Origin: Rhodosorus marinus CCMP1338
Lineage: Eukaryota > Plantae > Rhodophyta
Length of the DNA stretch: 64,000 nucleotides
Direction of reading: 5' to 3'
Assembly (NCBI GenBank): GCA_029953675.1
Contig: JAMWBK010000003.1
Location: 2,232,001 to 2,296,000, forward strand
The notes under the pieces were generated by a model, which saw nothing but the letters and a program-made list of their open reading frames with translations, made no database searches and was not told the origin of the DNA. A program made the position numbers and the translations under genes. This document shows positions 6,614 to 54,744 of the stretch, piece by piece. Every line of letters starts with the position of its first letter. Position 1 is the stretch's first letter.

Positions 6614-9600
6614 CTAGGCCACAGCTACGATGTCGTCGTCGGAAACGATGCGTGGATGCAGATGTAGTTTGCTCTTGAACAAGTCGAGATCTGCAATTAC
6701 AGTGGCGCTTGTTTCTAGCTCGTTCTCGACCGGGTGCTGGTTCCCATGAACGTGTACAGAGAGTTTTCTTCTCTCTCCGGCGTTTCGTGAAACGCGCCTG
6801 CTCGATCACAAGCAACGGTATTAAAGCGTTAGGTTTCCCCCATGCTCCATGATCCGGGAGAGCCAAACAACTTTACAATCGGGAAGCACAGCCTTTGCTT
6901 ACCGACGGAAAAGATCGACGACGTTCTCGTGAGTGACCTGCTGTAAGGCCTTCTCCTCCGCTTGCTTTCGGTCGTATACAAAGGTCTCGTTCAATATTTC
7001 TGTCCAAATTCGACTGGTTAGAATAGAAAGCTTGCCATCCTTCTCGCGCTTAAAAGTTCTCAGTCCCTCGACGTACTTCTGCAAATGGAGCGAATCAGGA
7101 CGTCACTCGACGCTCAGAAGAATAAAGTCCGTGGCTCGTGGGGCAGCATATCGACCACCTACCTTGAACTGCTCGTGCGGCATCGGCTTCAAGACAAGCT
7201 CCTCAAAAGTCTTCAGGAACGCTTCGATTCTGTCGTTGACAGTCTGCGGTGAACTAGTCGGGGATTGAACGATGAACTGAAGTCCGATGACGTTATTGTA
7301 CTTGGTCATGCTTGAATGGACGACGTATCCCAGTTGTTCAACCGTACGGAGCTGATTCGAACAAGGTTCACGGATCATTTGTGCCAGAACGCCAGCCACA
7401 CACGCGGCTTGAAAGTTCCTCGGAGAGATCGAGCCGAATTCAAAGTAGACAAGAACTGCAGAGTTGGATTCATCCGGGTTCGAGACGGCCGTTCTGTACA
7501 AACTACCCTCGGGAGACACCTGCAGCTCGGAAATGACCTGTCGTAATCGTTCTGCTCGACAGATTGGACGAAACTTGAGCTTGCGCTCAAACACCGAGAT
7601 CATTCCGTCTACTCCTTTAGCATCGATATTCCCGTGGGCCAGCATCTCAATGAACAGTTCGCTTCGCATCCGTGGAATCGACTCCTCAAGCTCCGCGAAA
7701 GATATCTGTGATATCTCTTTCTTGTATGCGTTTATATGCCATCTTGGGTGCTCCAACAGATATCCGAGGGTGTACATCGCTAACTGGTACGGTTGCTCTT
7801 TGTGGAAGTTGTTGTACTGCTCCTTAAGGGACTCCCGCATAACCTCATACCTGCCCATGTCCGGTTTGAAACTGGCGATCCTCTGGACAACCAGCGACAC
7901 TAGTTTTTCTAGCCGGTGGCTAAACCCCTCAAACATCAGGAGAATTCCACCTGTCCCGTGCGCGATGACGTGCCTTAAGCCAGCGATACGCGAATCGTAC
8001 GTAGATTCTTTCAGGTCATCGTTCAACATGGATATGAACAGGCTGGACAACACAAACATCCTCGGCGATGAGTAGACACATGGTGATTCGATGAAGACCA
8101 TTAAGTTGGTCTTTGGAAGTCTGAACTGGTTGTCCATCAGGTGGTGGATTCGGTAAGATTCGTCGTCACGAACCAACTCTGGACTTTCAGTTCCGGGCTT
8201 GGGTGCTTCCAGGACACTCAGATCAGCAGGGAGGAATTCGTTCGGCGGTGGGATGTTTAAGTTCTCGTCCCAGGACGATCGGCGCCATTCTTCAACCAGC
8301 TCTTCTTCGAGATTTTTCGCTGAGTAGCTCGTGTTGTACCATTCCTCAACACTATTGCATTCCTCCTCGCCAAGCTTGGACGTCAGGAAGACATACACTG
8401 GGGAGGCAATCAAGCTCTCCATCGTCTTATATATATTATCCTCATCAAACTCAAAGTACAGCAACGGCCCGCAAACATAGTGCTCTGCAGGATACTTGCG
8501 CATCGTCCCGGCCAGTCTCGTTGCTAGCGTCGTTCGATCCTCCTTCTCTTGGTAGTCGAAGGCTACCTCAGCCATGATCTTGCACTCCTCCCACAGGTTT
8601 CTGTTCACCCCGTGAGTCTTGATGAGGTTCAAATATCCGTAGACTAGCTGTACAATTTCCAAGTAGTGATTCTCACCGTCTTGGCTCAGCTCAATGCTCA
8701 CGTCGAGCAGAGAGAAATGGTCAAGATTGACGCTCGTCCTGACCAGCAACTCGTTGGCCCAATGTCGTGCAACGAGCAGGGACTGTAAACATCCTTTGCC
8801 TTCATGTCCGATCAAATGAGCGATGAACTGGTCCGTTTTGAACCGGTAGTCAAAAGGCGGAAGCACCCACCTGATCAACAGCTCTCTTTTATCTTTCACA
8901 GGCACAATGTGGGCGCACTTCGAACGAGTATCGAAGATTGGAATGTCTTCGTATTGCTCACTGCGAGGAGGAATCGATTTGTTCTCAATGTTGGCGAACT
9001 TAGACCTCACGAGCTCCTCCAACGAATCTAGGCCTTCAGGTGCAACCAGTGCCAAGCTCATGAGGTTCGAGGAGTAGTTTTCTTTGTAGAACCTTAGCAA
9101 TTCGTTGCGGACAGATATACCCTTCTGGCGTGGCCTATCCCAGAGACTGGTCTTGTTCCCAGGACCGAACTTTGAGAACGGATGGTCGTGGGAGGCGAAG
9201 TTTGCATGAAGCCTGAACGCGCGCTGCGCATCTGACTGAAGATTCATATGATGCTCTGAATCGACGGCATTGATCTCCCTCTCTGTCGCGGACAGGGTGA
9301 ACAACGGCGTGATGAAAAACTGCGCAAATCTGTCCAACGCTTCATGAAAAGCTCCGGCAGTCACCCAGAAGTAGTAGTTTGTATCTTCCATGACCGTGTA
9401 CGCGTTGCCGTCCCCGCCGTTCTCACGTAGAAATCTCTTATAGGAATCTTCGGCAGGGTACTTCTCAGTTCCGAGAAACAACATGTGTTCGCAGAAATGG
9501 GCCAGTCCAGGAAGATCAGCAGGATCAGAATATGATCCCACTGCTACGTTCATGGACGCCGATGCATTGTGCAGTTCCACGTCCGAAACAAGCAGCACCT

Positions 9601-9792
9601 TGATGCCATTCTCAAGCACCAGGGCTCTGTACCTTGTTTTCGGATCAGAAGAAAAGATACTGGCCCAGTTCAGAATCTGATCGAAACGGAAACCCTCGAC
9701 GGGAGGTTGGTCGCCTACTCTCGAGTATCCAGCTTGGAAATTCGAAGTGACACTCCAGAGCTGTCAAATTTGTCATTCCTGGACAAGTCCAT
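6614..9792 (-). CDS. IDE: Insulinase / insulin-degrading-enzyme-like M16A metallopeptidase
   Basis: Inverted zinc motif HFCEH, GSYSDP, GG..NAYT and E..AVDSEH, and LRTVEQLGYVV. Predicted exon 1 (9792-9719) splices across 9718-9633 to give ..KLDTREYRALVLENG. C-terminal exons end RRKLSVHVHG..VAVA* at 6614. Confidence 0.95.
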
Positions 9793-18055: not shown

Positions 18056-19303
18056 ATGGTTGCGACGACGAACAATTCTACGTTTGTGCTGGAGACTGAC
18101 GAAAAGGCTGATCAGGAAAATGGGGAAACCCCAATCCAGCCTGTGGCTGAGGTACAGAGCGAAGAAGCGACTGGAGCTGCGGGTAAGCGTCACAAGTCTG
18201 TATAGTCAGAGGCAGCCTGGCGATGGTGGTGACATCATCGGATGCGCTATCCGGCACAGCACTGCTCAGTGCTCATTCGATTCTATGCTACCTGCTCTGA
18301 CAGTTGATTTCGTTTGTATTGGACCTATACAGCGTTTTTGAAGTATCTGCCTTCCGGTAAACTGATGGTGTGCACGTTTGGCATTATCGGATCTCTCCTT
18401 CTCTATGCATATTTGCAAGAGAAAATTATTACGAAGCCGTACGAGGCGAACGTTCCGGAGGGTGAAGACCCGAAGGACTACATGTTCAAGAATGCTATGT
18501 TTCTGGTCCTGAACAACAGATTTGCGGCCGCACTCGTCGCAGCTCTGGTGATTTGCGCGAGGCGTGAGTTTCCGCAGCTCATCAATGCTGCTCCTCTGTA
18601 CAAGTACTTCATGATTTCCGTTTCCAATGTGCTCGCAACTGCTTGCCAGTACGAGGCTCTGAAGTGGGTTACTCTGCCGACCCAAACCCTCGCAAAATGC
18701 GCGAAGATGATTCCCGTCATGATATGGGGAACGCTTATTGACAGGAAGACCTACGGTTTGAGCGACTATGCGGTTGCTGTTACTGTTGCCCTCGGCTGCA
18801 CAGTCTTCACGGTGTCCGGCAACATTTCAGCGAAACACTCCAACCCCGAGGATTCTTGGTACGGCTTGGTTCTCATGCTGGGATACCTCGGCTTTGATGG
18901 ATTTACCTCGACCTTCCAGGAGAAGCTTTTCACTGGTTACCAAATGTCAATCTACAACCAAATGCTGTACGTGAACCTGTGCTCGGGTTTGATGTCATTG
19001 GCTTTCCTCGTTTTCGGAGGCCAGCTCTTCGAGTCGATTGCTTTCGCGTTCAAGTATCCCCAGCTGATGATTGACGCAACGGTGCTGTCGTTCTCCGCTG
19101 TGACGGGCCAGTTCTCGATTACTTACACAATCAAGAACTTTGGAGCCCTTGTATATGCTACGATTATGACGATCCGCCAGTTCCTGGCCGTCTTCGTGTC
19201 CAACATTGTTTACGGACATGCGATGACTGCGATGCAGTGGTTAGGCGCGGTGACTGTCTTCGGCGCGCTCTTGTACAAGAGTTACTCAAAGGCCAGAAAT
19301 TGA
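18056..19303 (+). CDS. UAA-family nucleotide-sugar / PAPS transporter (SLC35B/UTR-like)
   Basis: YAYLQEKI, CQYEALKWV..PTQTLAKCAKMIPVM.WG, DGFTSTFQEKLF, GQFSITYTIKNFGAL..ATIMTIRQ. Exon 1 (18056-18182) is spliced to ~18332. Confidence 0.9.
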
Positions 19304-24009: not shown

Positions 24010-27000
24010 TCAATTCCTTCCCGCAAGTAATATATCTACAGCAGCGACCATGTCGCCATTCGCCTGATCAAGCGCCTCATTTGCTGTTTCCTTGTCGAAA
24101 CCTAAAAGAATTAGCTGCTGTAGAAGCCCATTTCCGTCATCTTCGTCTTCGTTATTCATCTCCAGTTCAGGCTTTTTAGTCTGGCTCCCAGCGTCTTGCG
24201 ACGGGCCAGCTTCATCCGATGGAACGTGCTCCTCCTCTTGCATGACTTCTTCACTAGACACTTCTCCAACCGCCATGGGGAGAACGCTCTTCTTCTTGAA
24301 CGCGAACGTGATCTGCGCATGTTCCTGGTCCACATTGCCCAAGGTTGTGACAAAAACTGAAGACGAGCTGTTTATCTGTCCAAAGTAGGCCTTCTCAGCA
24401 AGAAACAGGTTGACAAAGTGGAGGGAAGCCAAACACTCTCCGTTCGTATACACCACGGCTCCATGAAGATCGGCGGTGATTCCTGGACCTGACTCGGCAC
24501 CAAAAACGTCTACCTCGCCGTTCTTCAAAACATCCCGCGGATGCAATGTCCAAGTTCCACTGCTTAACTCCGACTTGTCTACCCTCAACTCCTCGCCGGA
24601 GCGGTTCACAACTGCAAGATGAATGGACCGATGCGAGCTATCCTTTTTTAGCATGGGGTACATCTCAAATGCTGCCTTGGCGCTCTCCTCTATCAGACGC
24701 GTCTCTTCTTCAAGCTGCTTAACACTCTTCCTCTTCTCAAACTCCCCATCGTAGCTCTCCATGCCAGCAGGATCGCTCGACTGTTGCTCTTGCTGATCGT
24801 TGAGCAGAGTGTACAACTCGTCCCTGTTCTCCCTAGTGAAACACTTTATCATAGTCCATCGCCTTTCGTCTTCCACGTTCCTCGACTTCGTGCACAGCAG
24901 AAGAACGCTCTCGTCCTCCGGTGATCCTTCCACAGTCATAATATCATTCACATAGCATTTCCAGACCACCGCCAAGTTCATGTTCAACAAGTAAAAGTGC
25001 CGCTTAGTCACCAGCGCGACTCTTGGCTTCTGCACACCGGATGGCATTCCCGCATCGTGATGTTTGCGATTTCCAAGGACTCCTCTAGTAGAAGAGCTCA
25101 TCGCACTCCATATAGAAGCCAGTCCATGAGAAGGATCCGCTGTCAACAGCACCCATCCCACGAGGTCCTTGGAAGTCTCGTGAGTCAGCTTCTTCCTCCT
25201 TAGAGAGGTCATAATGTAGCTACCAAGCGACTGCTGAAAATCGTACGTGATGAGCCTCCTGTTCACATTATCCGTTCCGAGAAACGCACGCGGAGGTCTG
25301 GACGGTGCCGCAAAGTCCCTTGAAATCGTCACGATCGTTGAACGCAGACCTATCGTGGGTTCCGCGATCAAGTCCAGAGCTCCCGTGAGAGGCTTCAGGA
25401 CACCTCCTACGACTCCCTTTCCAAGGCCGCGGAAAAAGCCGGCTGGACCAGCGGCAATCGCACCTCGATACGGGTCCCTAAAAAGCCCCGTCACTCCCGA
25501 GCTGATTCCGTGTCCCAGCGACATCGCACCTCGAGCTAGCCCTTGCCTGAAGTTCTTCGTTGTCCGATGACTACCGCCATAGATAGCGCTACGTGTAGCT
25601 GCGTACCCCCTGTCAGATACTGCAGATTCCATCGTTCCCGCAAGAGCTTTCGGGATGGATCCTACTGCCCCTACTATCCCACCGAGAGTGTTACCAATCA
25701 GCGAAGTTCCACCTTTGTACAGTTCCGGCAAGAACTCCGCGCCGGACTTGACTTTGTAAGGCTCCACAAAGAAGTCCTTGGCACCTGTCGAAATATGTTC
25801 AAACAGGACCGATGGATTTCCGATGAGGTTGTTGGATGTGAAGAGCGTGAGCTTCTGCTTGTTAAGCTGTCCCGCGTAGAACTCGCCAATGAGAGAAAGA
25901 AGGTCCTCTTTCGTATCGAACGTGTGACGCAGCTGCAATGCGTTGAGGCGAAACTCGGCGTTCTCAACGTTACCAAACGTGGCGATGAGCGTTCTGATCA
26001 GACCCCAGTAAGAACCCGGGCGACGGGGTAGCGGCGTCCTTGAAGATGCCATGTTCAGTGTGATCTTCACCGGCGCGAGAAGTAGCGTTTCCACATAAAC
26101 GCACTGGAGGAGCTTTTCCTCGTCGTTTGCATGCGAGTACAGCTGCCGACTTTCGCCATCATCTGCTCCCAAACCTTCATGCGCAGATCTTACCGCTGGA
26201 TCCTGAAAGGACTGCGCCAGCAACCAGATCCTCATCACCAGCTCCTCATCAACGGACAGCTGCAACTGTTGAATAGCGCAATAGACCGCTTTAATCATCG
26301 AGATCCCACGGAAATCGATGCCATACACGATGTTCATTTCAAAGATTTGTCTCTGAGCGTTTGTCACCCCATGTTTCTGCAGATCCGAGGAGCTCGATTT
26401 TTGCTCCTTTGGCGCAGGTGACCATAGGACCACAGGCCACTTAGGTTGCGACAGCTGATTATCAATCTGTAAATCCTGTATCTGGATTCCGTAAGTCCGT
26501 TGTTCAGGGGACTTTTCAATGTGTAGCCTCGCATTTCGAACAAGTAGGTAAAGTAGTTCCTCCGGCCGGCTATCGACCATGGACACTCCAATCGAATCAA
26601 TCAGAATCTCCACGTCCAACACCCTCTGGATTTCGGGATCAGCTTCCGTAGGCTCATTCTTCGTCTCGACGATTGAGGTCTCCGTTTTCATTTCAGATTC
26701 GCCGAACGCAAAATCCGTTCCGTCCTCTTCCACGGCAGCGCTGCGTGCACCGGCCATCGTCAACGGTGAACGTGGTGTCGGAACAGATTTCCCACCGTCG
26801 AACTCGTCCCAGCCCATGACAACAACCGGGGACGCGGGCGAGTCTGGTTTTTCCAGGATCTTCGTAGCTGCAGCCGCAGCCCCCGGGGCTGGGAGGGGTA
26901 AGACGTCCGATGGGGAGTCTGAAAACGTTACGACTTTCGTTGGACCATCGAGGGATATGTTGATGTATAGCGACGTCGGAGGAGTGGTTTCAAAAGTATG

Positions 27001-30000
27001 TCTGTGGCTCGCCACTTCGTCTATTCCGATTTCAAACGACTCCGACTGCTTTTCAAGTGATGTCCCGGGGTCGCTTACCACACTAACCTGCAACGCTCGC
27101 CGACGAGGTGTGACCATGGGATCATCCCACGAGTATCGAGAAGAGCTTCCCGGCCCAATCAGCCAGAGAAGATTGTTTGAGGACGCTTGCGCAAACGCCA
27201 CCGACCTGTACCTGCACGAGTTGACCATCCGAAACGGTGGGTGTTCGCGATCCTCGGAGTAGACAACTATCTTCCTCGATCCTCCTGGTAACCGTACTAT
27301 CCGCGTCCTCGCTATGTACTGCTCCTCAACTTTTGGATTGTACATTTTGGCCGCGATCCCCTTTCCTTGGTCAGCGTTGATCGGGCTGCTCCAAATCCAG
27401 TCGCTCTGACCGTCAGCATCCACAATCCGGAGCCGAATGGACCTGTCCGAGCCCCACTTCTTGAAGTGCAGCGGTGCCACCTCACCTTGCCGTACATGGT
27501 TTACTGCGCTGGTCACTACTATGCCCCGTTTATCAATCGCGGACGAGTGGCACCATTCCAATGCCCTGCCGCTAAGATTCTCGAGCCATAGAGCAACACG
27601 AACTGTTACAACCGCGGTTCTCTGAAACCCCCCTCGAGCAGCTTTCACTTTTGCAAGCAGACTCCTATCATCCATTCCTTCCAACTCCATCGGCCTGGAG
27701 AGTTCTACCGCAGGACCACCAAGAGAACTCCAGCGATCGCTCTTGTTCACTCGGAATGCCAGTGATGGACCCAAGGCGCAAACAAACGGAGACGCTGGTA
27801 ACCCCGGGGGACTGGCGCTGAGTTGCACTACACCGCTGTCCAGAGTCTCTGTCCCATATGCTTTGATTTCCAGATCAACATCCGATCTGTTCCGAAGCCA
27901 AAGATCTGCGAAAAAGCAAGCACGTAAGGTGGAGCGGCTGCTTGCCAGCTCAACTCTCGCAGCGTACGTGTTCTCCCTACGTCCTTCATGCAGCGAGATT
28001 GGTATATCTCGAGCTCCAACTTCGCAGAGCGAAAATTTGCTTGAGAACGACTCAGATATGACGTCCTCAAATTCATACACGTCCGCAGGTCCGCTCACGC
28101 TGTTCACGTACGCCACTGAAGCATATATCTGTGTCGTCGGCCCGGCTCCGTAGACCGCAACCTCGTCCAAGGGTTTCATTTTGTAGCTTGCTACAAGAGA
28201 CGCCTTGTTTCCGTCCCGGGAATACAGTTTCACTCTTAAGGAGCGCGGCAGGGCGTTCTCCAATATAAGCGGCTTTCTCACGTTGAAATCCAACCATTGC
28301 CTGTCCGCCCCTTCGTCGCTGTCCACATGAACGGAAAACGGAAGGAGCTTTTGCCCGTTCTGCAGGTTTCGGCCATGACACGTAATCGACTGCCACGCGA
28401 CTCCGGGCCTAGAACCCCAGTCCCTAAGAGCTGAGCCGCCTCGTAGCAGAGTCCACGAAGTAGCTTCTGAGAAGCTCCCAACTTCTGAAGCAGAGTCGAG
28501 CGCTGATGCGTGCTTGCCCAGGTGCTGGAGTTGACTACGGTGCATCGACTGGGCTTTTTGGTTCGCCGAGGTGTGCTGGTCTCTTCTCCATAGAGGCGGA
28601 CTCCACTCGAACTCCAGGTCAGACTCTGGTATCGGGCGAATCCTTATCTGCTGGTTAAGGTCCTGAACAGGTATGCTCCGGTGGCCACCGTCCGATTCTA
28701 CTCGTAGGATGTTGTTCCCGCACCTCACCTCGATCGGTACCGAGAGATGATTCACAACTCGTTGGGATGTCCTGATTATCGCGAGCGGGATCCCGCTCCG
28801 CATCGTAACTTCCCATGCCAGCTCCAAACCTCTGGGTTGGAAGCTCACGCTGTCTATTCGCATCTCAGCAAGCTTCAACTCCTTCGGCCGAAATCCTGAA
28901 GGAGAAACGAAAACTCTCATCTTTCTAAGCTTTTCATGGCTATGGCTAGATTCTACTAGGTCGTCTCTGGACATCTCGACCGCTTTTTCTTCATCCGATC
29001 TCAGGACGTTTTTGGTTTGGGAAAAATTGGTCCAAAATGTAATATCCATTCCGCTCTCGTTGCGGACGACGAACGCGGATGACTCTGGTCGTCTCACCCG
29101 CTCTCTAGTCTTATCGACCGCCTCCGGTGTCTCCCGACCCACGGATTGAATCGCCTGCTTGATGGCCCTTGTCACCAACATGACTCCGTCGATTGTGACT
29201 GGAGTTGCATTCAGATCCAGTCGATCGGCGGAATGTAGCATTATCGACTTCGACTCAGCTCCAGTACTTACTGCTAGCTCCATAGGCCATGGCTCAATAC
29301 CTGGAACCCACCAGCCCTTGCGTGGATCATAAAGGTCCGCCGACAGCTCTCCACTTAGCTTGAGTATGGAGCCGGCTACGGAGCACAGTGCAGCTCTAGA
29401 GATCAAAACCTCCATAATAGGAATATACAAGTTTCCCGGCTCATCGGTAAACAAGACGCGAAACTTGGAAAGCGAAAGCACGAAGGTAAGGGCTCTTGTT
29501 TCCACGGACTCCGGAACTTCGATCACTGGCCTCGTTGGGTCCTGCTTCGGCTTCTTCATTCGTAGACATCTACTAACAACGTCCACAACGAACTTCACGT
29601 CTTGCACTGCCAAACGGGCGGTTATATCATCGCTGCTGCTTAGGTGTAGAAGCTGACCATCTTCTACTCTCTCCCCGCTAGGTCCGAGCTCAAGCAAGAG
29701 CTCGGTCGGGAAGATTAGCGGTGTTTCAAACTCCGACGGAAACCGTATCCTTACTCTACCTTCGCCCTCTCGAACCTTCCCTTCCGTAATCGCCAGCCCC
29801 AGAGAATTTGAGCCGATGTCAAGACTCGTCTGACCAGTGTAAGCAGTCTTATTTATCTCCATGGAGATGTCTCCTCTGAGCACTGCGCAGCGATCATCTC
29901 GTTCGAAAGTATCCGCAAAGAGGAGAACCTCGAGCTGAACCAGATTGACCACCACAGTACGTCCACAGAAAGGGATCTCAAAGCCTGGGAGTGATGTCTG

Positions 30001-33000
30001 AACCACAGGCTCCCCGGGCAACGCTAGTATCGTGAAGACCATAATGAATTCTGGAAGTATGAGCAGTCGAACGTCCGAGACCACCACCATGACGTGGGAC
30101 CGTCTCAGAAATGGGCGATCGAACGTGACATGAATCTGTGGAGCCCTATTTTCGTTCATTGCAGAAGCCAGCACCTCACTCACCCTGCCCGTCCGCCGGT
30201 CCACGAGCCGTTCCAGCTCAGTCTGAATGTCAAAGTATATCCTGGAATCGGAGCTGAAGTCGAAGATCATGTTTAGACTCCGTGCGGAGATTTCGAAAAT
30301 GCACTTTGCCAAGTCGTTTGGTTCGGCATTGGCGACAAGCCTCAAATTGACTTTGGGGCAGTTGAGAATCAGACGCATTGCGGGTGGAAGCCTGTTTGAA
30401 TGAGCAACGACATCCTCAGCCAGATTCTTCTCCGCCTGGACCATCAGTTCATCCCAACTAGGCGCTTGGTGCTCAATGAAGTTCTCCGTGAACACAAAGT
30501 ACAGAATCGAATACTGCGCCTCGCAAAGCAATACATCCAGACCGTCAACTGGCGCAGTCCTGATTCTTATAGCAGGAAGCCGGTGGTGAGGGTTCGACTC
30601 TACCAACGCCTTATCACCCTTCTGCATCTTCGCGCTTTCAATATCCTCAAACTTGTCTCCCTCCCTCCAGTAGTCCATTTTCGCGTTGATGCAAAGCCTA
30701 TCGATAATTGGCGTACTGTGAGGCTGCTTAGCAGCTTCTAGGAAGCTAATCTTCTCCGAACCCATTGGGTATAACGCATATACGTTCAGCTCGTCAACAT
30801 TCAAATTGAATGCAAAGTTGTATCCCATCGAAGGCGGTTGGTCGTTGTCCAGGCTGATCGAACGTATGAGAGCGCGAACAGCTTCGTGGTTGTTCTTCGA
30901 ATGCCGTGGAAACGTGACCTCTATTCCTTCTGTAGTGAGCTTCACTCGCGCCTTGCGTGGGGCGTTCGACTCTTTCTTCATCTTGGAGCTCTCTTTCACA
31001 AACACTTCCGCGGTAGATACTTTGTTCGTCTTGGAAACGATTGTTTTGCACTCCGCGGCGAGGGATCTGAAGTACGTCTCCAGCTCGAACAAAAACTTCT
31101 GCACAAACACGATCCGGAGGGCCTTGAATCGAGCTGTCACTGACGGTTCGCCATTCCCAGGCATCGGCAGAAATGCAGAGACTCCAAAGTTCTGCCCGAT
31201 CTTGCTCGATCTGTTCTTTCCGCCGGTATACTCGAGGAAGCTCCGCTGTTCCTCAAATTCGGTAAGCAGATTTTTCATGGAAATTGATCCAAACTGAACG
31301 AAAGGGAAGAGACTAGTCCAGTCAGGATACAATGGTTGCATCTTTCACGGCTGCCTATTGAAAGATTTGCAGTGTTTGTGGACACCTGCTTACCCGGCCT
31401 TCAATATTGCTATCGCCCGACGAGCCTCGGTTAACCGAACAGAAAAGCTCCCTGACTTCCAAGGATGATATATCCCCTGTGACTTTCGAAGTCACCAGGA
31501 TTTTCAGGCCATCAAATTCAGATTGCAGTTTGACGCTTCCCAGCTTTTGTATGACCGCTCGCGATCGGCGTATTACGACACCCGCCTATATGATAACACG
31601 ATTAAGTCAAAGACAAAATCTTCCTCGCAGCGCTTCATCGTCGCAGCGTTTGTACTAGTAAACTAGTTTTCGGCCCAAAAACGCTTACCTTTTCCCGTAG
31701 CAACTTGGCCGCTGCCGCTGCCGATGTACCTGCAGCAGCGAAGGGATCGTCGAATTCTGCTCTTTCCTCACCCTCTCCATCCTTGACTACATAGAGAAAT
31801 CTCAAAACTTCTAAAATTGTCTCGTTCACAACCACGCAGTCCAGCATCCTAGTCTTTACTTTGATGTCCTGCAACAGCTGTGCGTCCTTTTTGAACCTAA
31901 CGTGTACGAAAGTCTTCCTATCGCCGTCATCGTCTTCGTTGCCAGAGCCTGAATACACGATCCTCCTCGGCTCCCCCGGAAAGTCCATTACTTCGAAGAG
32001 CTGGAGCCTAAAATCCACGGCGGTTGACTGCTCAGAGGCTGACACTCGAATTTGGGATCCGTATGCAGCAGCCTGCACTATGTCGTTCTCGAACTTGTCC
32101 GTGAGCTTCAAGACGACCTCCTGCAAAGCAAACCGAATATCGAGGTCATTTCCGACGCGTGGTCGCCGCACAGGGTTGGAATCTGGATGAGTACCATCCT
32201 CCAAATCCTTCTCACTCTCATGATCGCCTGTTTTCCCGACTTGCTCTAATGCAGCGCTACTTTCACGGTCCTCTTCGGAACTAGCAAGCAAGTCCTGCTT
32301 CCACGTCCTTGTCAAAAGAAGCAGCCGTCGATATGCATCCTGAGCAATTGTAATTTGAATCCCCGGCATGACCCCGAGTACACGGATTCGAGAAGTGGAC
32401 TCGGGGTCATCAATCGGAATGCTCTCGTCCTCGACTACTTGCACCGAAGATTTGATCGAAACCGGTTCGAGAATCCGCAGAGAATCATTTCCGGAGCTTC
32501 TTCTGTCGACTAATGAAGCGCTGAGGTCCGAGATTGCGGCGACGTATTCCGTGTAGGGCAATGCCTCACTGCCCCGGATGCAACGTCCAGTTGTCTCTAG
32601 TCCCACCTTCCCCAAGTCGACCATCAGTGCGAAGTCGTCACTTTGGCGATCCGGGATCAGGATTTTAGGAGCTCTCAGTGAAATATCGAGAAAAATTGGA
32701 ATTTGCTTGGACGCCATTGCCTTCTTTAACTGCATCCTCAACAGCTTAAGTCTCTCGCTCGCAGCAGCCCCAAGCACTTGCATTATTGCATCAACTCTCT
32801 GGTTCCTTGTCTTCCAGAACTTGGCAGCGGAGATCAGCGAACCCTTTGGCCCGTCCACGACTGCCTCCAAACCCGAAACAGCAACTTCCACTTTCAATTC
32901 CGGGTCTGCCCCCTGGGCCTCGTCCTCGGATTCCGTACCCGGAGACCTTTTCATTAAGCGAACAGCGGCCAGGAGGTCCCTCTTCTGCTGACGACCGTCG

Positions 33001-34856
33001 TCAGAGTCGGTTCGAAGGTCTTGCAATGCTTCCGACACATTAGCTGGAAAAGCAGTGCGCATTTCTAATGCCGAGCTTTCCGTGTGCTTCACCGACCTGG
33101 AGTACAATAATTTACTTTTTTGGTCGAGTCCAACCAATTCAAGAGCGCCCAGTAAGATCTCTGTCACAACTTGGCCAAGCAGCGGCCGAGTAGTAACCCC
33201 CACTCGGAGTTGTCTCAGATTCAGCGTAGCAATGCTGGAATTGCCAACTCCGTTTTGCCCTTGCTCAACTAAATTTAGAGATCCGCTCTCTAGCAAAATT
33301 CCCAGCTTCATCTTGGGGGCCTCGGTGTTTTCGTCTCCTCCGTCATCCTCTTCTTCAAGATCGCTACCTCCGAGATCCTCCACAACCTCCCTTGCGTAGC
33401 TGAGCGACTTTTGGGAGCTCAAGCTACCGTCGGTGGCAGCTGAAAAACTATCCTGTGACTTTACGGGTTCAGTTTCGGCACCCACCTGCGCTGTCTCTAT
33501 AGCTGCAGATGCCTTGAAAAACCGAGCAAATCGTTGTCCTGCTGTTGGGGTGCTCTCCACGCCACCGACCTTCTGTAATTTCATTTCCTCTTCAAGTATT
33601 GCGTCCACGGCATCTCGGAAGCCAGTAATTTCCAGAACTGACAGCTCGTGTTCTAACTCGATCGCAATTTTGCTGTCTTGATCGGCTCTACTCTCTTCCC
33701 CTCCTCGCCTAGCTTTGAGCACAATGATTCTAGACGTGATATAATCAATTGCTCGGCGACTCCAGGCTTGGACCCCTTGCTCCGTCCACAGTGCTGAAGT
33801 CTTCCTACGCTCCGTAAAGCCCGGTAGCAACTTCTCCAAGCTCCAGATCCAGAGTTCCTGCGGGTCGTTGGGGAAGATTCCGCTTCTTTCCTTTTTCGAA
33901 CTTGCCAACTCGTTTGTAAGCTTAAGGAAGGAAGAATACTGGAAGTGGTCCATTGTCATCTCCATCGATGGGAAGAACACTTCTAGCTTTACGTCTGGTT
34001 CAGGCTCAGAGCTCGACAAAGCTCGCGCACTCGCCCTCCTCACCGTCGCTCTTACAGTGCCACTAATCGGCGATATGAGCTCGGCAGCCCCTTCCGGAGG
34101 TTCTGCGAGGTACAGGATCTGAGATCTCAGAGTCCCGTGAACTTCTGGATTATAAATCCTTTCCAAACTCCCGCATCGGATGGCCAGACCGTTCAACTGG
34201 ATTAGCTTGTGGAGCATCTCTGATGCGTTATCTTCAACGTAAACAACGTTCCACCCCGAGTCCGCAGAAAGAAGTCGAAGGGCCGCGAGGTCGATGTCTA
34301 TAGAAAAAGGTTTTTCTGGGTCTGTCTGATCTTCAAAGCGAATTTTGACGTCGCAAAGCTCAATTTGAATATTATCAACGACCTTACTGAGTAGTCGCGA
34401 CGTCACCCCGCCAAACAGCCTCGAATATCGAGTGCTCTTCGCTGAGGAAGACGACACTGTTTTCTCAGTCCATCTGCTCTCCCGAACCAGGTCATCAGCT
34501 GCGAGTTTTCCGGATTTAAGTCGATTTTGCCGTAATCGAAATGCCTCTTGGCTAGAAACCTTCACAGGCGAGGCCACAATTGAAAGGTCGGACAGCGTGA
34601 TTCGTATCGGTTTGCTACGCAAGCTCTTCCATGGAACTTCGACATTTAGAGTACCGATCTGTCCAGCGAGAACCGTGACGGGCACATTGATACCCAGGGT
34701 TTCAAACAGGATAGAGAGGGCCTCCGAGTGAAGCGCTAAGCTTTTCAGCTCAAGCTTTCCGTTCCATACCCCAATTTGTATCTTGTCCTTATCCAATCCA
34801 AGGACGTACTCGCCCAAGACACGCGTGAGCGCCTCGGACACCAACCCCTCGAACAT
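24010..34856 (-). CDS. VPS13: VPS13-family bridge-like lipid transfer protein, ~3547 aa, with extra C-terminal aegerolysin-like and UBA domains
   Basis: Chorein-N start MFEGLVSEALTRVLGEYV..IGVWNG.LEL. Six VAB repeats with the conserved N (e.g. FVVRNESG, LWLENLSG, FRMVNSC). APT1/ATG2_C region (GNPSVL..I..G..DFF.EP; KG..GG..KP..G..DL), then PH. Exons 34856-31689, 31585-31394 and 31293-24010 join in frame. Confidence 0.95.
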
Positions 34857-37599: not shown

Positions 37600-39835
37600 A
37601 TGTCAAATTCCGACAGCCAGGGACGAGGTTCGGGCGAGTTGCTTGAGCCGGTGGAGATCCACATAGAGGAAGGTTCGTCGTATCGAGATTTGAGCGCTGA
37701 CTCCTGGCTAACTGTTGAGACCGAAGAGGATGATGCCGATCAGAATTTTTTTCCGGAGGTAAGTTTTCAGTTTGTAATCTGGCAGCAATCTGAGCAATCA
37801 CCACCCGCTCACCGAAGTTTCGTAATCACAGCTCGACGATGATGAGTACAAAGAGAATGAATTGTACACATCAGACGGAAAGCGAAGAGTGAACGAAATG
37901 AGCCATCTGTCCTCGGTGGCAGGGAAGTCAGTACTCGATTGCTTAGTTGATGTTTTGGCGGGAGTGAAGGTGCAAAGGAAGAAGAGGCTTCGTTTTAATA
38001 CGTCAGAGCAGTGGCTGTGGGTAACTAGCGACCTGCAGACTCTGCAATCGAAGACCCGTCGGAAACCAGACGCTCCAGAATCTCTTAAACTTCACCAGTG
38101 CCAGAAGCTTAAGGTGGATCAGTGCGGGTTGTCGTTGGAATTTGTTAGCCGGAAGAGGGCGACTTTTACCTTCTCCAATGAACAAGAAGCCAGAGAATGG
38201 TTGACGGGGTTGTCCTTCCTAGTGCCCACTGAGGCTAAAGTATTTGCCAATGGCCAGCAGATGAGGAATCGGCACCTCTATAATCCTGCCAAGGATTCGT
38301 GGCGTGGTAAGCTAGTGGCGGACCGAAAACGGGTTAATCAGTACGTCCTGCTCGGTGGAATCGGCAGAGGAGCGTTTGGAAAGGTCAAGTTGGGTCTTTC
38401 CAAGGAGGACAAGAAGTTTTACGCTGTCAAAATTATTGAGCAAGCTCAGAGACATCATTTTAGCCGGGATAGAATCACCAGCGAGGAGCACGCGATTTTG
38501 AAAAAGTTGCATCACCCGAACATTGTCCGTCACCATGACGTGCTGTATGATGAAGAGAATGACCGGGTAAGCATAAAGAAACTTGCCCTTTTTCGTTTTT
38601 CGTGTTTCAGGTGCATCGTGAAGCTTACCCTGAGCACATTGACTGTATGCACAGATTATTTATGTTGTTGAGTATATGTCTCGAGGAGTAGTTCTTGACA
38701 GTAAGAAGCTAGAGGGAGGCAAACCGATGAGTGAGAATGGAGTGCGGGAGATCGTGCGCGACGTTGTATGCGCTTTGGAGTACTTGCAAAAGCAAAATGT
38801 CGTCCATCGCGATATCAAACCCGACAATTTGCTGAGAGCTGGAGACGGAACCGTGAAGTTGAGTGATTTCGGAGAGGCCAAGTATTATAACTTGAAGAGT
38901 AGAGATGACCGTGGAAAGAATCTTGCTCCTGGGACACCGGCCTTCATTGCACCGGAGATGTGCACATCAGAGGCACTCACGGGCCGACCTGTCGAAGATT
39001 ATTCGGCAGACGTGTGGTCTCTCGGCGCTACAATCTTCTATATGGTACGTTCCCATGTATAGGAGTTATTGCTGCAATCGGTTGTCTAATAGGGCTTGAA
39101 ATGCCACGGCTTGTATAGGTATACGGAAGGGCTCCGTTTGTTGCAAAATCGGTCCTCGATATTTATGAGGCGATAACCAAAGAAAGCTTGCAGTTTCCCT
39201 CCGCACCGAAGGTATCACGGAACCTACAAGACCTTTTGAGTAAGATGCTGACGAAGGAACCTCGGTCCCGGGTGAGACTGGTTGACGTCATAAGCCATCC
39301 CTGGTTTGAAGGGCGCGTCAAACAGAAGGCCAGTATTAAACCGATCAGCGTCACGGACAACGATATCGCAAATGCCATCAAAAAAGCAACCTACGTAGTA
39401 ACCGAATGATCGACAAGGACAGACAGTTCCACTTGCTGCCGACGTAGTAAATCGTCATCAGGACCGTGGGTGATCCTCAAGCTTCTTCAAGACCGCGCTT
39501 CTGAATCTGTCCAATACAAAGTTGTCGCGCTGGTCACTAAGATCGAGCAGGCACAAGACGGAGCCCTATAAGCCTGCTACCTACATGTTGGCGAGTCCTT
39601 GATGCATAGTGGAAGGTTACAGGAAAAGAGAGGACTGATGAATACCAGAGCAACAAGCGAAGGGAGGCAAAGAACCAGCAAGATCCGTTTTTCTAAACAG
39701 CTTGACTCCGGAGAGCAGCTCGATCTCAGCAATCCAGCGGCAGGAATGCATACAACTCGGAGCGGAAAAGCGCCTCGAGCGTCAGGAGTCCTAGATCGGG
39801 AAATCCGTGTCCCTGACTTATTACTCACATTATAG
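37600..39835 (+). CDS. Ser/Thr kinase, CAMKK/GRIK(SnAK)-type, with N-terminal PH-like domain; 3' end uncertain
   Basis: VNQY..LG.IGRGAFGKVKL, AVK, HPNIV, HRDIKPDNLL, DFG, GTPAFIAPE, ADVWSLG..Y.M..G..PF. The upstream domain ends EAREWLTGLSFL, as in PH domains. Confidence 0.85.
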
Positions 39836-52044: not shown

Positions 52045-54744
52045 ATGGAGGGTGCATATGCGCGGATAGTACCGGCTGCGCCTGTGTTTTACCCTACTCA
52101 GGAAGAGTTCCTGGATCCTTTGGCTTACATTCGTCAGATTCGGGCTGAGGCATCTGTACATGGGATATGTAAGATTATCCCGCCCAAGGGATGGGATCCT
52201 CCGTGTCTCGTGAATGATTCTTTGAACTTCTGCACGACTCTGCAATCGCTGCACAAGCTGAAGGACCGCTCGCCCGCGCCAGAGCAGTTTATGAGGAGGC
52301 TGAAGTTGTTTCATAGGGATGAGAGGAAGAATTTTAGGTTGAGACAGGAACAGGGTACTGAAAACGGGGAGAGGCAGCCCCATCCCCGCTTGAAATTTCC
52401 ACCAAGAGTAAGCGTTACGGATCAGCATGGGACCGGAGTCGATCTGTGCGCCTTGTTCAACGAAGTGCGGACAAACTGCGATGGCGGGACAGTTTCGTGG
52501 GACAAAGTGGCCCACAATCTGAAGTAAGCAATCCAGCAAGCGGAAATTGCGAACGGAAATGAGCTCTGGCTCTAATCGGTTTTGCTTTGGTTGGCTTCCT
52601 CTGTGCAACCAAAAATTGAAGATTGTTTCACGCAAGGAACCCAAAGGAGCTGGAAATGATCTACGAGCTCTACCTGTCAAAGTATGAACAAAGGGTCAGC
52701 AAGGACGGCGATAATTTTCTAGAAGATTTCGAGAAGCACCTCGTGAAGGAGCGGCAAGAGGAGAAAGCAAAACTTGCAACTGACGCGGCTGTTGTGGACC
52801 TAACCTGTCACAAATGTGAAAGCGGAAAAGATGACGAACAGCTGCTCATATGCGATTCGTACGTTTGCTGCAGTGCTTCTGAACTAAGAAACAAACTGCC
52901 CCCGTGACCGGTGGTTAACATATGTCATCTTTGAAAACCTACACAGGTGCGATACTGGTTGGCATATGTTCTGTATGACACCCCCAATGAAACGATTGCC
53001 TCCGGAGGATGAGCTCTGGTTTTGTCCCAATTGCGATCCTGGAGCAGGAAAGGAGTTTGGTTTTGACGTAGGCGAAGAGTGAGTCACAGCAAACATCTGA
53101 TTTTGGTTTTTCGATCGACGTTTTCTGACTCCTCTGACTTGCCTACTTCAGTTTCTCCTTGGAAGAATTCAAGGAATACGCCACGGCCATCAGGAACAAC
53201 TGGTTCCACGATCTCGGACGTGAGCCTACTATTGACGAAATTGAGGAGCAGTACTGGAAGGTCTCCCGCGAAGCCGAGAGATTGGTGTACATTCCTTATG
53301 GATCAGATTTGGACACGCGCGAGGTGGGGAGTGGGTTTCCAAACCCCAGAAATGAAAAACATTCCGGGGGTGAGTATGATGAGTATCTTCGATGCCCCTG
53401 GAACTTGAATATTTTCCCCGAACTCAACGGGTCGCTGCTGAGCTATCTCACGGAAAGCATTAAGGGAGTGACTGTTCCTTGGCTATACCTTGGAATGATG
53501 TTTTCCAGCTTCTGCTATCACACGGAGGACTCTTACATGTACTCCATTAACTACCATCACTTCGGGTCGCCAAAGGTATAATCCAAATCAGTGATCAGGA
53601 TGTGAAGGCAATCGGCGGAGTTTCGCTTCAACTCACAGAATTGTACCAGCGCTAATGCCGTTTGTCTTTGTGCCCCTGCAGATATGGTATGGGACTTCAG
53701 GCGGAAAGGGCGCAGCCCACTTTGAAGCCGCGATGAGATCTGCGGCACCAAAGCTGTTCGATGCAAATCCGGGCCTTTTTTACCACCTTACCACAATGGT
53801 TTCTCCCATAGACCTCTTGAATAGGGGGGCAAAGGTTGTCCGCGCCGTGCAAAACCCGGGCGAGTTTATTATGACCTTCCCCCAAGCTTACCATGGCGGA
53901 TTTTCGACCGGATTTAACTGTGCGGAGGCGGTAAGTATTCTCTTAAAAGCAATTTTGCTTGAGCAAATGAAACATGGCTTCGTGGTGCCGCCGCTACTTC
54001 TCCGCAATGCTTTGTTCTCAAGTCCGAGCATGGTTGTCCAGGTTAATTTCATTACCGCGGACTGGATTCCGTTCGGCCGCGCAGCCTCAGCGAGGTACAA
54101 AATACACAAGTGGGAGCCCGTATTCTGCCATGAAGAAATCATTCTCCGAACCGTCTTCTCACCGTACTTTAAGAGAAAAACTTTCCCACGAGACGCAAAG
54201 CTTCTCTACGCTGAGCTCGCGCATGTGAGTTGTTCTTGTCCCTACCTCTTCCCATGGCCGCATCTAATGCAGGGAACCTCCTCCCGCGTTCTTCTGCAGA
54301 TTGTCGCTCGGGAGCGAGCTCTGAGAGAGAAAATGCTTTTCGGCATCCCCACGAGGCGCCGGATTGACCCTAGCGCCTTAAAACACAAAATATGTGAAGA
54401 ATGCAAACAGATTCCGTTTCTCTCTGCAGTGGAGCTTAGAAACCCGGACACTCGCGATAAAGCCTATTTCTGCTCCGAACACTGGACAACTTTGCAGAAG
54501 GAAGCAAGGGAGGAGTTCGTTGCTTTGTATACTCACACGGACGAGGAATTGAAACAGGTTGGTTCTACAAGTTGTGATTCAGAGAGTTAACCATTGGTAT
54601 TGAACAGCTAGCAACTCACAGAGCAGGTTTGCATTGTTTTCATTACAGGCATTGACTAAGGTGAAGGAAGCCAGCATCAGCCACAGAAAAATTGCCAAGA
54701 AGGAAATCTTCCCCGTTCCCCAGCAGCCCATTATTATTGACTAG
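52045..54744 (+). CDS. KDM5/JARID1-type H3K4 demethylase (JmjN-ARID-PHD-JmjC-C5HC2)
   Basis: APVFYPT.EEF.DPL.YI..I; ARID; PHD C..C..G.D..LLICD.CD.GWH..C..W.C..C; PWNLN; MFSSFCYHTED..YSINY.H.G.PK.WYG; QNPGEF..TFPQAYHGGF..GFNCAEAVNF. Confidence 0.92.

Follow-up and report, generated by a model that had tools for sequence, protein, structure and literature searches.

In the red alga Rhodosorus marinus (class Stylonematophyceae), the lipid-transfer protein VPS13 carries close to its C-terminus a small β-sandwich that, from sequence and structure comparisons, we identify as a divergent member of the aegerolysin family, belonging to the branch of the insecticidal protein Cry34Ab1. The gene lies in a window of 64,000 nucleotides from strain CCMP1338 (contig JAMWBK010000003.1, forward-strand positions 2,232,001 to 2,296,000; all coordinates below count from the first letter of this stretch), where it occupies 24010..34856 on the minus strand. 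Its 3547-aa product, KAJ8906925.1 (P0001 in our searches), maps exactly onto the window. The sandwich spans 114 aa (aa 3342-3455; 24289..24630, minus strand) between a PH-like region and a terminal UBA domain. For bridge-like lipid transfer, a central question still open is how a VPS13 bridge comes to select the membrane that accepts its lipid. Once the sandwich is identified as a Cry34-like aegerolysin, a so far anonymous decoration becomes the subject of a testable hypothesis, in which a tip carrying two conserved loops is a candidate reader of a membrane ligand.

Kinship with Cry34-type aegerolysins

A first-pass annotation, made from the letters of the window, had drawn attention to this region by quoting a 111-aa peptide, RSIHLAVVNRSGEELRVDKSELSSGTWTLHPRDVLKNGEVDVFGAESGPGITADLHGAVVYTNGECLASLHFVNLFLAEKAYFGQINSSSSVFVTTLGNVDQEHAQITFAF, whose fold it called aegerolysin- or ET79-like. 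The peptide is the exact minus-strand translation of 24298-24630, an interval whose plus-strand translation is full of stops, and it corresponds to aa 2238-2348 of the open reading frame (ORF) 24010..31341 (minus strand) and to aa 3342-3452 of the 3547-aa product. The interval takes in nearly the whole domain and leaves its last three residues outside. The fold call itself was borne out by a phmmer match to Cry34Ab1, by a profile-profile match and by AlphaFold2 combined with Foldseek.

When a 124-aa segment was compared with all PDB sequences by phmmer, a single match was returned: 4jox_A, the '13.6 kDa insecticidal crystal protein' Cry34Ab1 (E 2.3e-12). The alignment extends over residues 2-112 of 123 (111/123 covered), with ~30% identity between the two proteins across the whole domain. 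The core of Cry34Ab1 includes Val6, Ile8, Val10, Leu18, Trp31, Tyr63, Leu73 and Phe75 (PMC4229197), and these positions align with hydrophobic or aromatic residues in the R. marinus domain, among them an invariant buried Trp.

In an exhaustive HMMER scan of 1.84 billion representative proteins, only ten proteins matched at E<=1e-3. They include the protein itself, returned as the full gene product KAJ8906925.1 under the UniRef name 'UBA domain-containing protein', three further VPS13 C-termini (P0002, P0005 and P0007) and the amoebozoan protein P0008, in which the domain occurs twice. Bacterial matches were the same B. thuringiensis protein as in the PDB search (E 1.1e-5) and, at E 4.5e-4, an Aneurinibacillus protein named 'aegerolysin family protein'. 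These bacterial relatives, P0006 and P0010, match the Pfam aegerolysin family PF06355 (E 1.4e-20 and 7.6e-9 respectively), which makes them bona fide members. Three bacterial Ig-repeat proteins from the same scan (P0003, P0004 and P0009) were set aside as unrelated, since only short stretches of them match.

Comparison of profiles led to the same family: when the profile of the four red-algal domains was aligned with a bacterial aegerolysin profile, hhalign gave a probability of 97.3% (E 1.8e-11) over 114 columns. Other searches added little. A word-indexed protein search with the domain alone gave no match, and with alignments it returned only the relatives already found; a metagenome scan with red-algal motifs found no relative; and a scan of bacterial genomes added only homologues from Paenibacillus and Lysinibacillus. 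Together, the sequence comparisons confirm that the domain is homologous to Cry34Ab1-type aegerolysins, with a resemblance far beyond chance.

The predicted structure agrees with this assignment. From the single sequence, AlphaFold2 produced an unusable model (mean predicted local distance difference test, pLDDT, 44.7), but with an alignment of 12 sequences it gave a nine-stranded model with a pLDDT of 87.1 and a predicted template modelling (pTM) score of 0.80. Searched against the PDB with Foldseek, this model ranks 4JOX first (E 7.4e-10, template modelling (TM) score 0.79/0.85, root mean square deviation 1.8 Å), followed by Nakanori, fragaceatoxin C (FraC), equinatoxin II, sticholysin II and other actinoporins. 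Further matches were ostreolysin A (OlyA) with and without sphingomyelin, pleurotolysin A (PlyA), AfIP-1A and thermostable direct hemolysin (TDH); OlyA, PlyA and AfIP-1A superpose with TM scores of ~0.7. Each of the 40 top-ranked PDB matches is a β-sandwich of the aegerolysin, actinoporin, Nakanori or TDH type, and the first unrelated fold appears at rank 41 (E ~0.1). As modelled, the R. marinus domain is thus a β-sandwich of the 13-15 kDa class that superposes on solved aegerolysins.

The same model also matched viral models in BFVD. These comprise an aegerolysin-like protein of an ascovirus and uncharacterised proteins of Pandoravirus celtis, Terrestrivirus and Yasminevirus (E 5e-6 to 2e-4), and the fold may be commoner in giant viruses than the literature states.

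The VPS13 gene and the age of the fusion

The 10.8-kb gene consists of three exons (34856-31689, 31585-31394 and 31293-24013, with the stop codon at 24010-24012, all on the minus strand) separated by only two short introns with GT..AG ends (31586-31688, 103 bp; 31294-31393, 100 bp). Its N-terminal (chorein) region, at 32595..34856 (minus strand), matches Pfam PF12624 VPS13_N (E 3.5e-61) and was found in ORF 31635..34856 (minus strand), immediately upstream of ORF 24010..31341. The latter, 2443 aa long, holds a VPS13_M fragment and the adaptor-binding VAB domain (27115..28791, minus strand; Pfam PF25036 VPS13_VAB, E 9.9e-21). By its VPS13_N and VPS13_VAB matches, the host protein is a VPS13. 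One transcript isoform in MMETSP appears to retain an intron that breaks its ORF in two, with products of 1135 aa (P0012) and 2424 aa (P0011).

Downstream of VAB, the best-conserved stretch of the C-terminus (25258..26016, minus strand) occupies the position of ATG2_C and is named after that position; it is 99% identical between R. marinus strains and 79% identical to P0002, and matched no Pfam family at E<=0.1. The PH-like region follows at 24784..25257 (minus strand). The first-pass annotation had placed a PH domain here, and both the position and the published VPS13R plan (PMC10683392) agree with it. In contrast, sequence support is weak: a match to Myosin_TH1, which has a PH-like fold, falls below the cut-off (E 0.002), and PDB sequences gave no match to the region. 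We therefore treat the PH assignment as a positional one, which rests on the VPS13 plan and the literature. Then come an acidic, charged and poorly conserved linker (linker 1; 24631..24783, minus strand), the sandwich, and a second linker of 53 aa, acidic, of low complexity and fast-evolving (linker 2; 24130..24288, minus strand). The protein ends with a UBA domain (aa 3509-3547; 24013..24129, minus strand), a feature absent from the first-pass account, which matches Pfam UBA at E 7.9e-4 and the Mud1 UBA domain in the PDB at E 1.9e-4. The Pfam score lies just below the cut-off in R. marinus and above it in the P0002 orthologue (23.8 bits), whose UBA domain is 61.5% identical.

This order of domains is not new. 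A rhodophyte-specific clade of VPS13 proteins, VPS13R, has been described in which a β-sandwich, sometimes together with a UBA domain, was found with HHpred after the C-terminal PH domain (Leterme et al. 2023, Contact; PMC10683392, main text). Given its rhodophyte origin and its post-PH sandwich and UBA domain, the R. marinus protein is probably a bridge-like lipid-transfer protein of the VPS13R type. R. marinus and P0002 show exactly the sandwich-then-UBA order, and P0005 and P0007, which have no UBA domain, fit the 'sometimes' of that description. Since a post-PH sandwich with UBA was already on record for VPS13R, the first-pass suggestion that the architecture had not been described does not hold. 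What the main text of that paper offers on the module itself is the name 'β-sandwich', under which it is grouped with the sandwich of HsVPS13B; this main text contains no word beginning 'lysin' and nothing on aegerolysins or on lipid binding by the sandwich, and leaves Rhodosorus unmentioned (PMC10683392).

Several features indicate that the sandwich is a genuine part of the protein. It shares one ORF with VAB, the C-terminal regions and UBA, and no stop interrupts the path from the PH-like region through the domain to the UBA. Its composition (GC 0.52, GC at third codon positions 0.595) is close to that of the exon (0.525 and 0.583). That it belongs to the same mRNA is supported by an MMETSP transcript from another R. 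marinus strain, an independent transcriptome assembly, which encodes a complete 3548-aa ORF including the domain.

The search of other rhodophyte VPS13 C-termini recovered the module in three more, all with the PH-like region followed by the domain: P0002 (Logan assembly L001, run SRR22824282), with domain and UBA; P0005 (Logan assembly L002, run SRR22824290), whose contig encodes VPS13_N, VPS13_M and VAB as well; and P0007, from Purpureofilum apyrenoidigerum. P0005 and P0007 end directly after the sandwich. The red-algal copies are 24-40% identical to the R. marinus domain, and overall identity between P0005 and P0007 is 33%. Copies so divergent imply that the fusion of VPS13 with the domain is old. 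Within this divergence the domain is better kept than its surroundings: its identity to P0002 is 43%, against 23.5% for linker 1 and 15% for linker 2, and between R. marinus strains it is 93%, against 81% for linker 2. We conclude from these comparisons that the post-PH 'β-sandwich' belongs to the Cry34-like aegerolysin branch, as a divergent member that became fixed long ago.

The two Logan runs, SRR22824282 and SRR22824290, are neighbours in SRA and hold divergent VPS13 genes with the same post-PH domain; by similarity, one of the sequences is nearer Rhodosorus and the other nearer Purpureofilum. We also considered a duplicated VAB repeat as the domain's origin and rejected it, given an hhalign probability of 0.7% against the protein's own VAB region. 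One VAB segment (aa ~444-484, KKWGSDRSIRLRIVDADG...NADQGKGIAAKMY, within 27115-28791, minus strand) loosely resembles the start of the domain and its GxG loop, an echo that, at the same hhalign probability, is probably due to chance.

A putative conserved tip and its possible ligand

To locate the constraint on the domain, we took strand boundaries from the model, assigned the loops to the two ends of the sandwich by strand connectivity, and compared the four red-algal sequences. Placed in this way at the end that bears the N-terminus are the Gly turn that precedes the buried Trp, SGPGITAD (joining strands 4 and 5), LFLAE (strands 6 and 7) and a short loop linking strands 8 and 9. Their mean pairwise identity is 0.67, compared with 0.11 for the loops at the opposite end and 0.30 for the strands. 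In sequence terms, then, constraint is concentrated on one set of loops. Two of them stand out. SGPGITAD (24469..24492, minus strand; mean pairwise identity 0.62) carries the motif G-x-G-x-T-x-D, which is nearly invariant in the four copies. LFLAE (24394..24408, minus strand; 0.87) belongs to the invariant F-x-N-L-F-L-A, with N81, L82, F83, L84 and A85 the same in all four, and is predicted to form a hairpin whose hydrophobic tip is exposed. In the bacterial proteins, too, it is these two loops that are conserved, with other residues.

A precedent exists for a function at this end of the fold. In RahU, two loops close to the N-terminus make up the ligand cavity on which binding to membranes with ceramide phosphoethanolamine (CPE) depends (PMC7985367). 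Because of this, together with the conservation found there, we propose the tip as the working surface of the red-algal domain.

We envision, with moderate confidence, that the sandwich serves in docking, at the end of the lipid bridge that meets the acceptor membrane. Flexible acidic linkers would tether it to the PH-like region on one side and to the terminal UBA on the other, and its tip, built from the G-x-G-x-T-x-D loop and the N-L-F-L-A hairpin, would contact a ligand on the membrane. This ligand would most likely be a lipid head group, with shallow insertion of the Leu-Phe-Leu side chains. The contact would add a second, low-affinity (coincidence) signal to those of the VAB, PH and UBA domains. 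On this reading a membrane lipid would be the ligand and the module would have a share in targeting; the membrane-targeting lipid sensor proposed in the first-pass annotation is plausible in the same sense.

A number of points weigh against such a docking role or against the family assignment beneath it. The classical aegerolysin ligands, sphingomyelin (SM) with cholesterol and CPE, are found mainly in exoplasmic or lumenal leaflets, whereas the VPS13 domain resides in the cytosol. The invariant LFLA hairpin would serve equally well as an interface with another protein or within VPS13 itself, and the grouping of the conserved loops on one tip was deduced from the way hairpins connect in the secondary structure of the model. 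The alignment used for structure prediction is shallow (12 sequences) and includes Cry34-type sequences, which biases the model towards 4JOX; its agreement with the sequence comparisons is no separate line of evidence. Moreover, the Pfam aegerolysin hidden Markov model (PF06355) misses the isolated domain, which matched no Pfam family even at E<=10 and no family in an NCBIfam scan. The same Pfam model also misses the whole R. marinus protein and P0002, P0005, P0007 and P0008. Family membership therefore rests on transitive homology via Cry34-type proteins, and the red-algal and amoebozoan domains are, by these searches, a divergent branch reached only through them. Finally, Cry34Ab1, the closest solved relative, is reported to bind cholesterol/CPE/SM vesicles only weakly, and its receptor is disputed (PMC7985367).

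The most serious competitor, though clearly the less probable, is that the sandwich recruits a protein, its tip or a sheet face binding an organelle-resident partner (a scramblase or an adaptor) or VPS13 itself. Aegerolysins and Cry34 do act in two-component systems, in which the membrane-bound partner recruits PlyB/MACPF or Cry35/Toxin_10 (PMC4229197, PMC6433908), and the weak vesicle binding of Cry34Ab1 (PMC7985367) would fit as well. The invariant NLFLA hairpin resembles surfaces at protein interfaces, and the VPS13-aegerolysin link in Plasmodium, described below, is itself a protein contact, from PH domain to HEPN-like domain (PMC13036008). All characterised relatives of the fold touch membranes, however, and no MACPF or Toxin_10 gene was seen among the larger ORFs near the gene, a negative that is expected to be uninformative for eukaryotic neighbours. 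An unlikely variant keeps the lipid as ligand and turns the domain into a sensor of damage or lost leaflet asymmetry: it would recognise a normally lumenal sphingolipid exposed by scrambling or rupture, while the UBA reads ubiquitin and the bridge is recruited for repair. This would reconcile a cytosolic domain with the exoplasmic ligands classical for its family. It would also parallel the pathway of sphingomyelin scrambling and repair by neutral sphingomyelinase (PMC8986845) and the recruitment of human VPS13C to damaged lysosomes (PMC12081312, PMC13328759). In the amoebozoan P0008 two such domains are joined to an EEP domain that resembles sphingomyelinases, and the UBA is conserved at 61.5% identity between R. 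marinus and P0002; yet it is missing in two of the four lineages, and the idea is entirely inferential.

Improbable, in our view, is an inert spacer or extra VAB-like repeat, retained for structural reasons and without a specific ligand. VAB repeats offer a precedent, as they have a lysin-like β-sandwich topology and nevertheless do not bind membranes (PMC8978259), and the failure of the Pfam aegerolysin model to detect the domain could be read in the same way. But the sandwich has no detectable similarity to the VAB region of its own protein and is strongly similar to Cry34-type proteins, and the fusion has been kept across lineages whose copies are only 24-43% identical. In addition, its tip loops are more conserved than its core strands (0.67 versus 0.30), the reverse of what a mere scaffold would lead one to expect. 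There is next to no chance that the domain stems from faulty assembly or annotation, or that it reached VPS13 as a recent insertion or contaminant from bacteria. That the closest non-algal relatives are Bacillales proteins might suggest such an origin, but we rejected it on composition, transcript and orthologue evidence: the ORF is continuous and has the composition of the rest of the gene, and the domain recurs in the independent transcriptome from a second R. marinus strain as well as in the three other red-algal data sets.

Parallels in other proteins

Cry34Ab1 (4JOX) and its Bacillales kin are the best match in sequence and structure, with the same strand order, conserved core residues including the buried Trp, and conservation in the same two loops. 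They differ in setting, being free-standing extracellular bacterial proteins of ~120 aa that work with a Toxin_10 partner, whereas the R. marinus domain is a cytosolic domain inside a eukaryotic protein of 3547 aa. Acting as a small free-standing protein with a larger pore-forming partner (MACPF or Toxin_10) is a typical trait of aegerolysins, though not one that strictly defines them. The residues at the tip differ as well: the bacterial proteins have S-x-G-x-M-T-G and P-Y-x-G-S where the red-algal ones have G-x-G-x-T-x-D and L-F-L-A. PF06355 matches the bacterial Cry34-type proteins and not the R. marinus domain.

Similarity to the better-known readers of membrane lipids is confined to the fold. 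Ostreolysin A6, pleurotolysin A, Nakanori and the actinoporins read membrane lipids, namely SM/cholesterol, CPE and SM. All share the β-sandwich with our model (Foldseek TM 0.6-0.8), but they are only 10-15% identical to the R. marinus domain, with no significant similarity in single-sequence comparison. Actinoporins also have an N-terminal pore-forming helix, which the R. marinus domain does not have, and we know of no MACPF partner for it.

A parallel comes from Plasmodium falciparum. There, at the inner membrane complex, the PH domain of VPS13L1 binds PfAegerolysin (PF3D7_1364000), which contains two aegerolysin domains (Nat Commun 2026; PMC13036008), the contact being made through a HEPN-like domain of PfAegerolysin (PMC13036008). 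In both systems the C-terminus of a VPS13 is coupled to aegerolysin-type domains at the acceptor membrane, beside the PH domain. The difference is that in Plasmodium these domains sit on a separate protein and act in trans, whereas in R. marinus a single domain is fused in cis after the PH-like region. PF3D7_1364000 was not among the matches of the exhaustive scan, and we draw the parallel from architecture, not from sequence. The red-algal protein can thus be seen as a natural cis counterpart of the pairing reported in 2026, and the analogy suggests that the coupling of lipid bridges with a toxin-type membrane-binding fold is not a parasite oddity.

Metazoan VPS13 proteins, too, carry lineage-specific recognition modules on their conserved lipid-transfer rod: UBA and ricin-B lectin in VPS13D, WWE in VPS13A/C and a jelly-roll sandwich in VPS13B. 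These are inserted before VAB or within the rod, not after PH, and none has the aegerolysin fold.

The amoebozoan P0008 (Nolandella sp. AFSM9, a eukprot transcript of 862 aa) shows the module in another context. It contains two tandem Cry34-like domains (~aa 12-128 and 165-285; E 2e-4) followed by an EEP domain (Pfam PF03372, E 8e-8), and every one of the EEP domain's eight PDB sequence matches is a sphingomyelinase. P0008 looks like a possible lipid-sensing sphingomyelinase. As in R. marinus, the same divergent Cry34-like module is built into a eukaryotic multidomain protein, and both copies are missed by the Pfam aegerolysin model. Unlike in R. marinus, the host is enzyme-like rather than a lipid bridge, two copies are present, and the protein is known from a transcriptome alone. 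With the VPS13R sandwich identified, the aegerolysin field gains cytosolic, multidomain eukaryotic members that escape its Pfam model.

A broader scenario can be imagined, and we regard it as rather unlikely in its entirety. VPS13 and aegerolysin-type modules might be an old, recurrent pair: red algae would have fused the two in cis, and apicomplexans, whose plastid descends from red algae, would bring them together in trans. The domain would read a sphingolipid exposed to the cytosol on a growing, scrambled or damaged membrane and guide lipid delivery there, with the UBA adding a ubiquitin signal; the amoebozoan fusion would be a second, independent use.

In the literature that we searched, no link in cis was made between VPS13 and an aegerolysin or actinoporin domain, and the sandwich was nowhere named aegerolysin- or Cry34-like. 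One VPS13 paper cites RahU for the topology of VAB, and a 2022 review of aegerolysins makes no mention of algae. As far as this search extends, four points are new: the VPS13R sandwich as a Cry34-like aegerolysin, its conserved loop tip, the parallel with Plasmodium and the amoebozoan sphingomyelinase-like fusion.

No tRNA genes were found in the window, and the ORFs around VPS13 belong to ordinary nuclear genes, for an M16 insulinase-type peptidase (7103-9619, minus strand), a UAA nucleotide-sugar transporter (18314-19303, plus strand), a protein-kinase fragment (37862-38671, plus strand) and a fragment of a JmjC/C5HC2 demethylase (53655-54590, plus strand).

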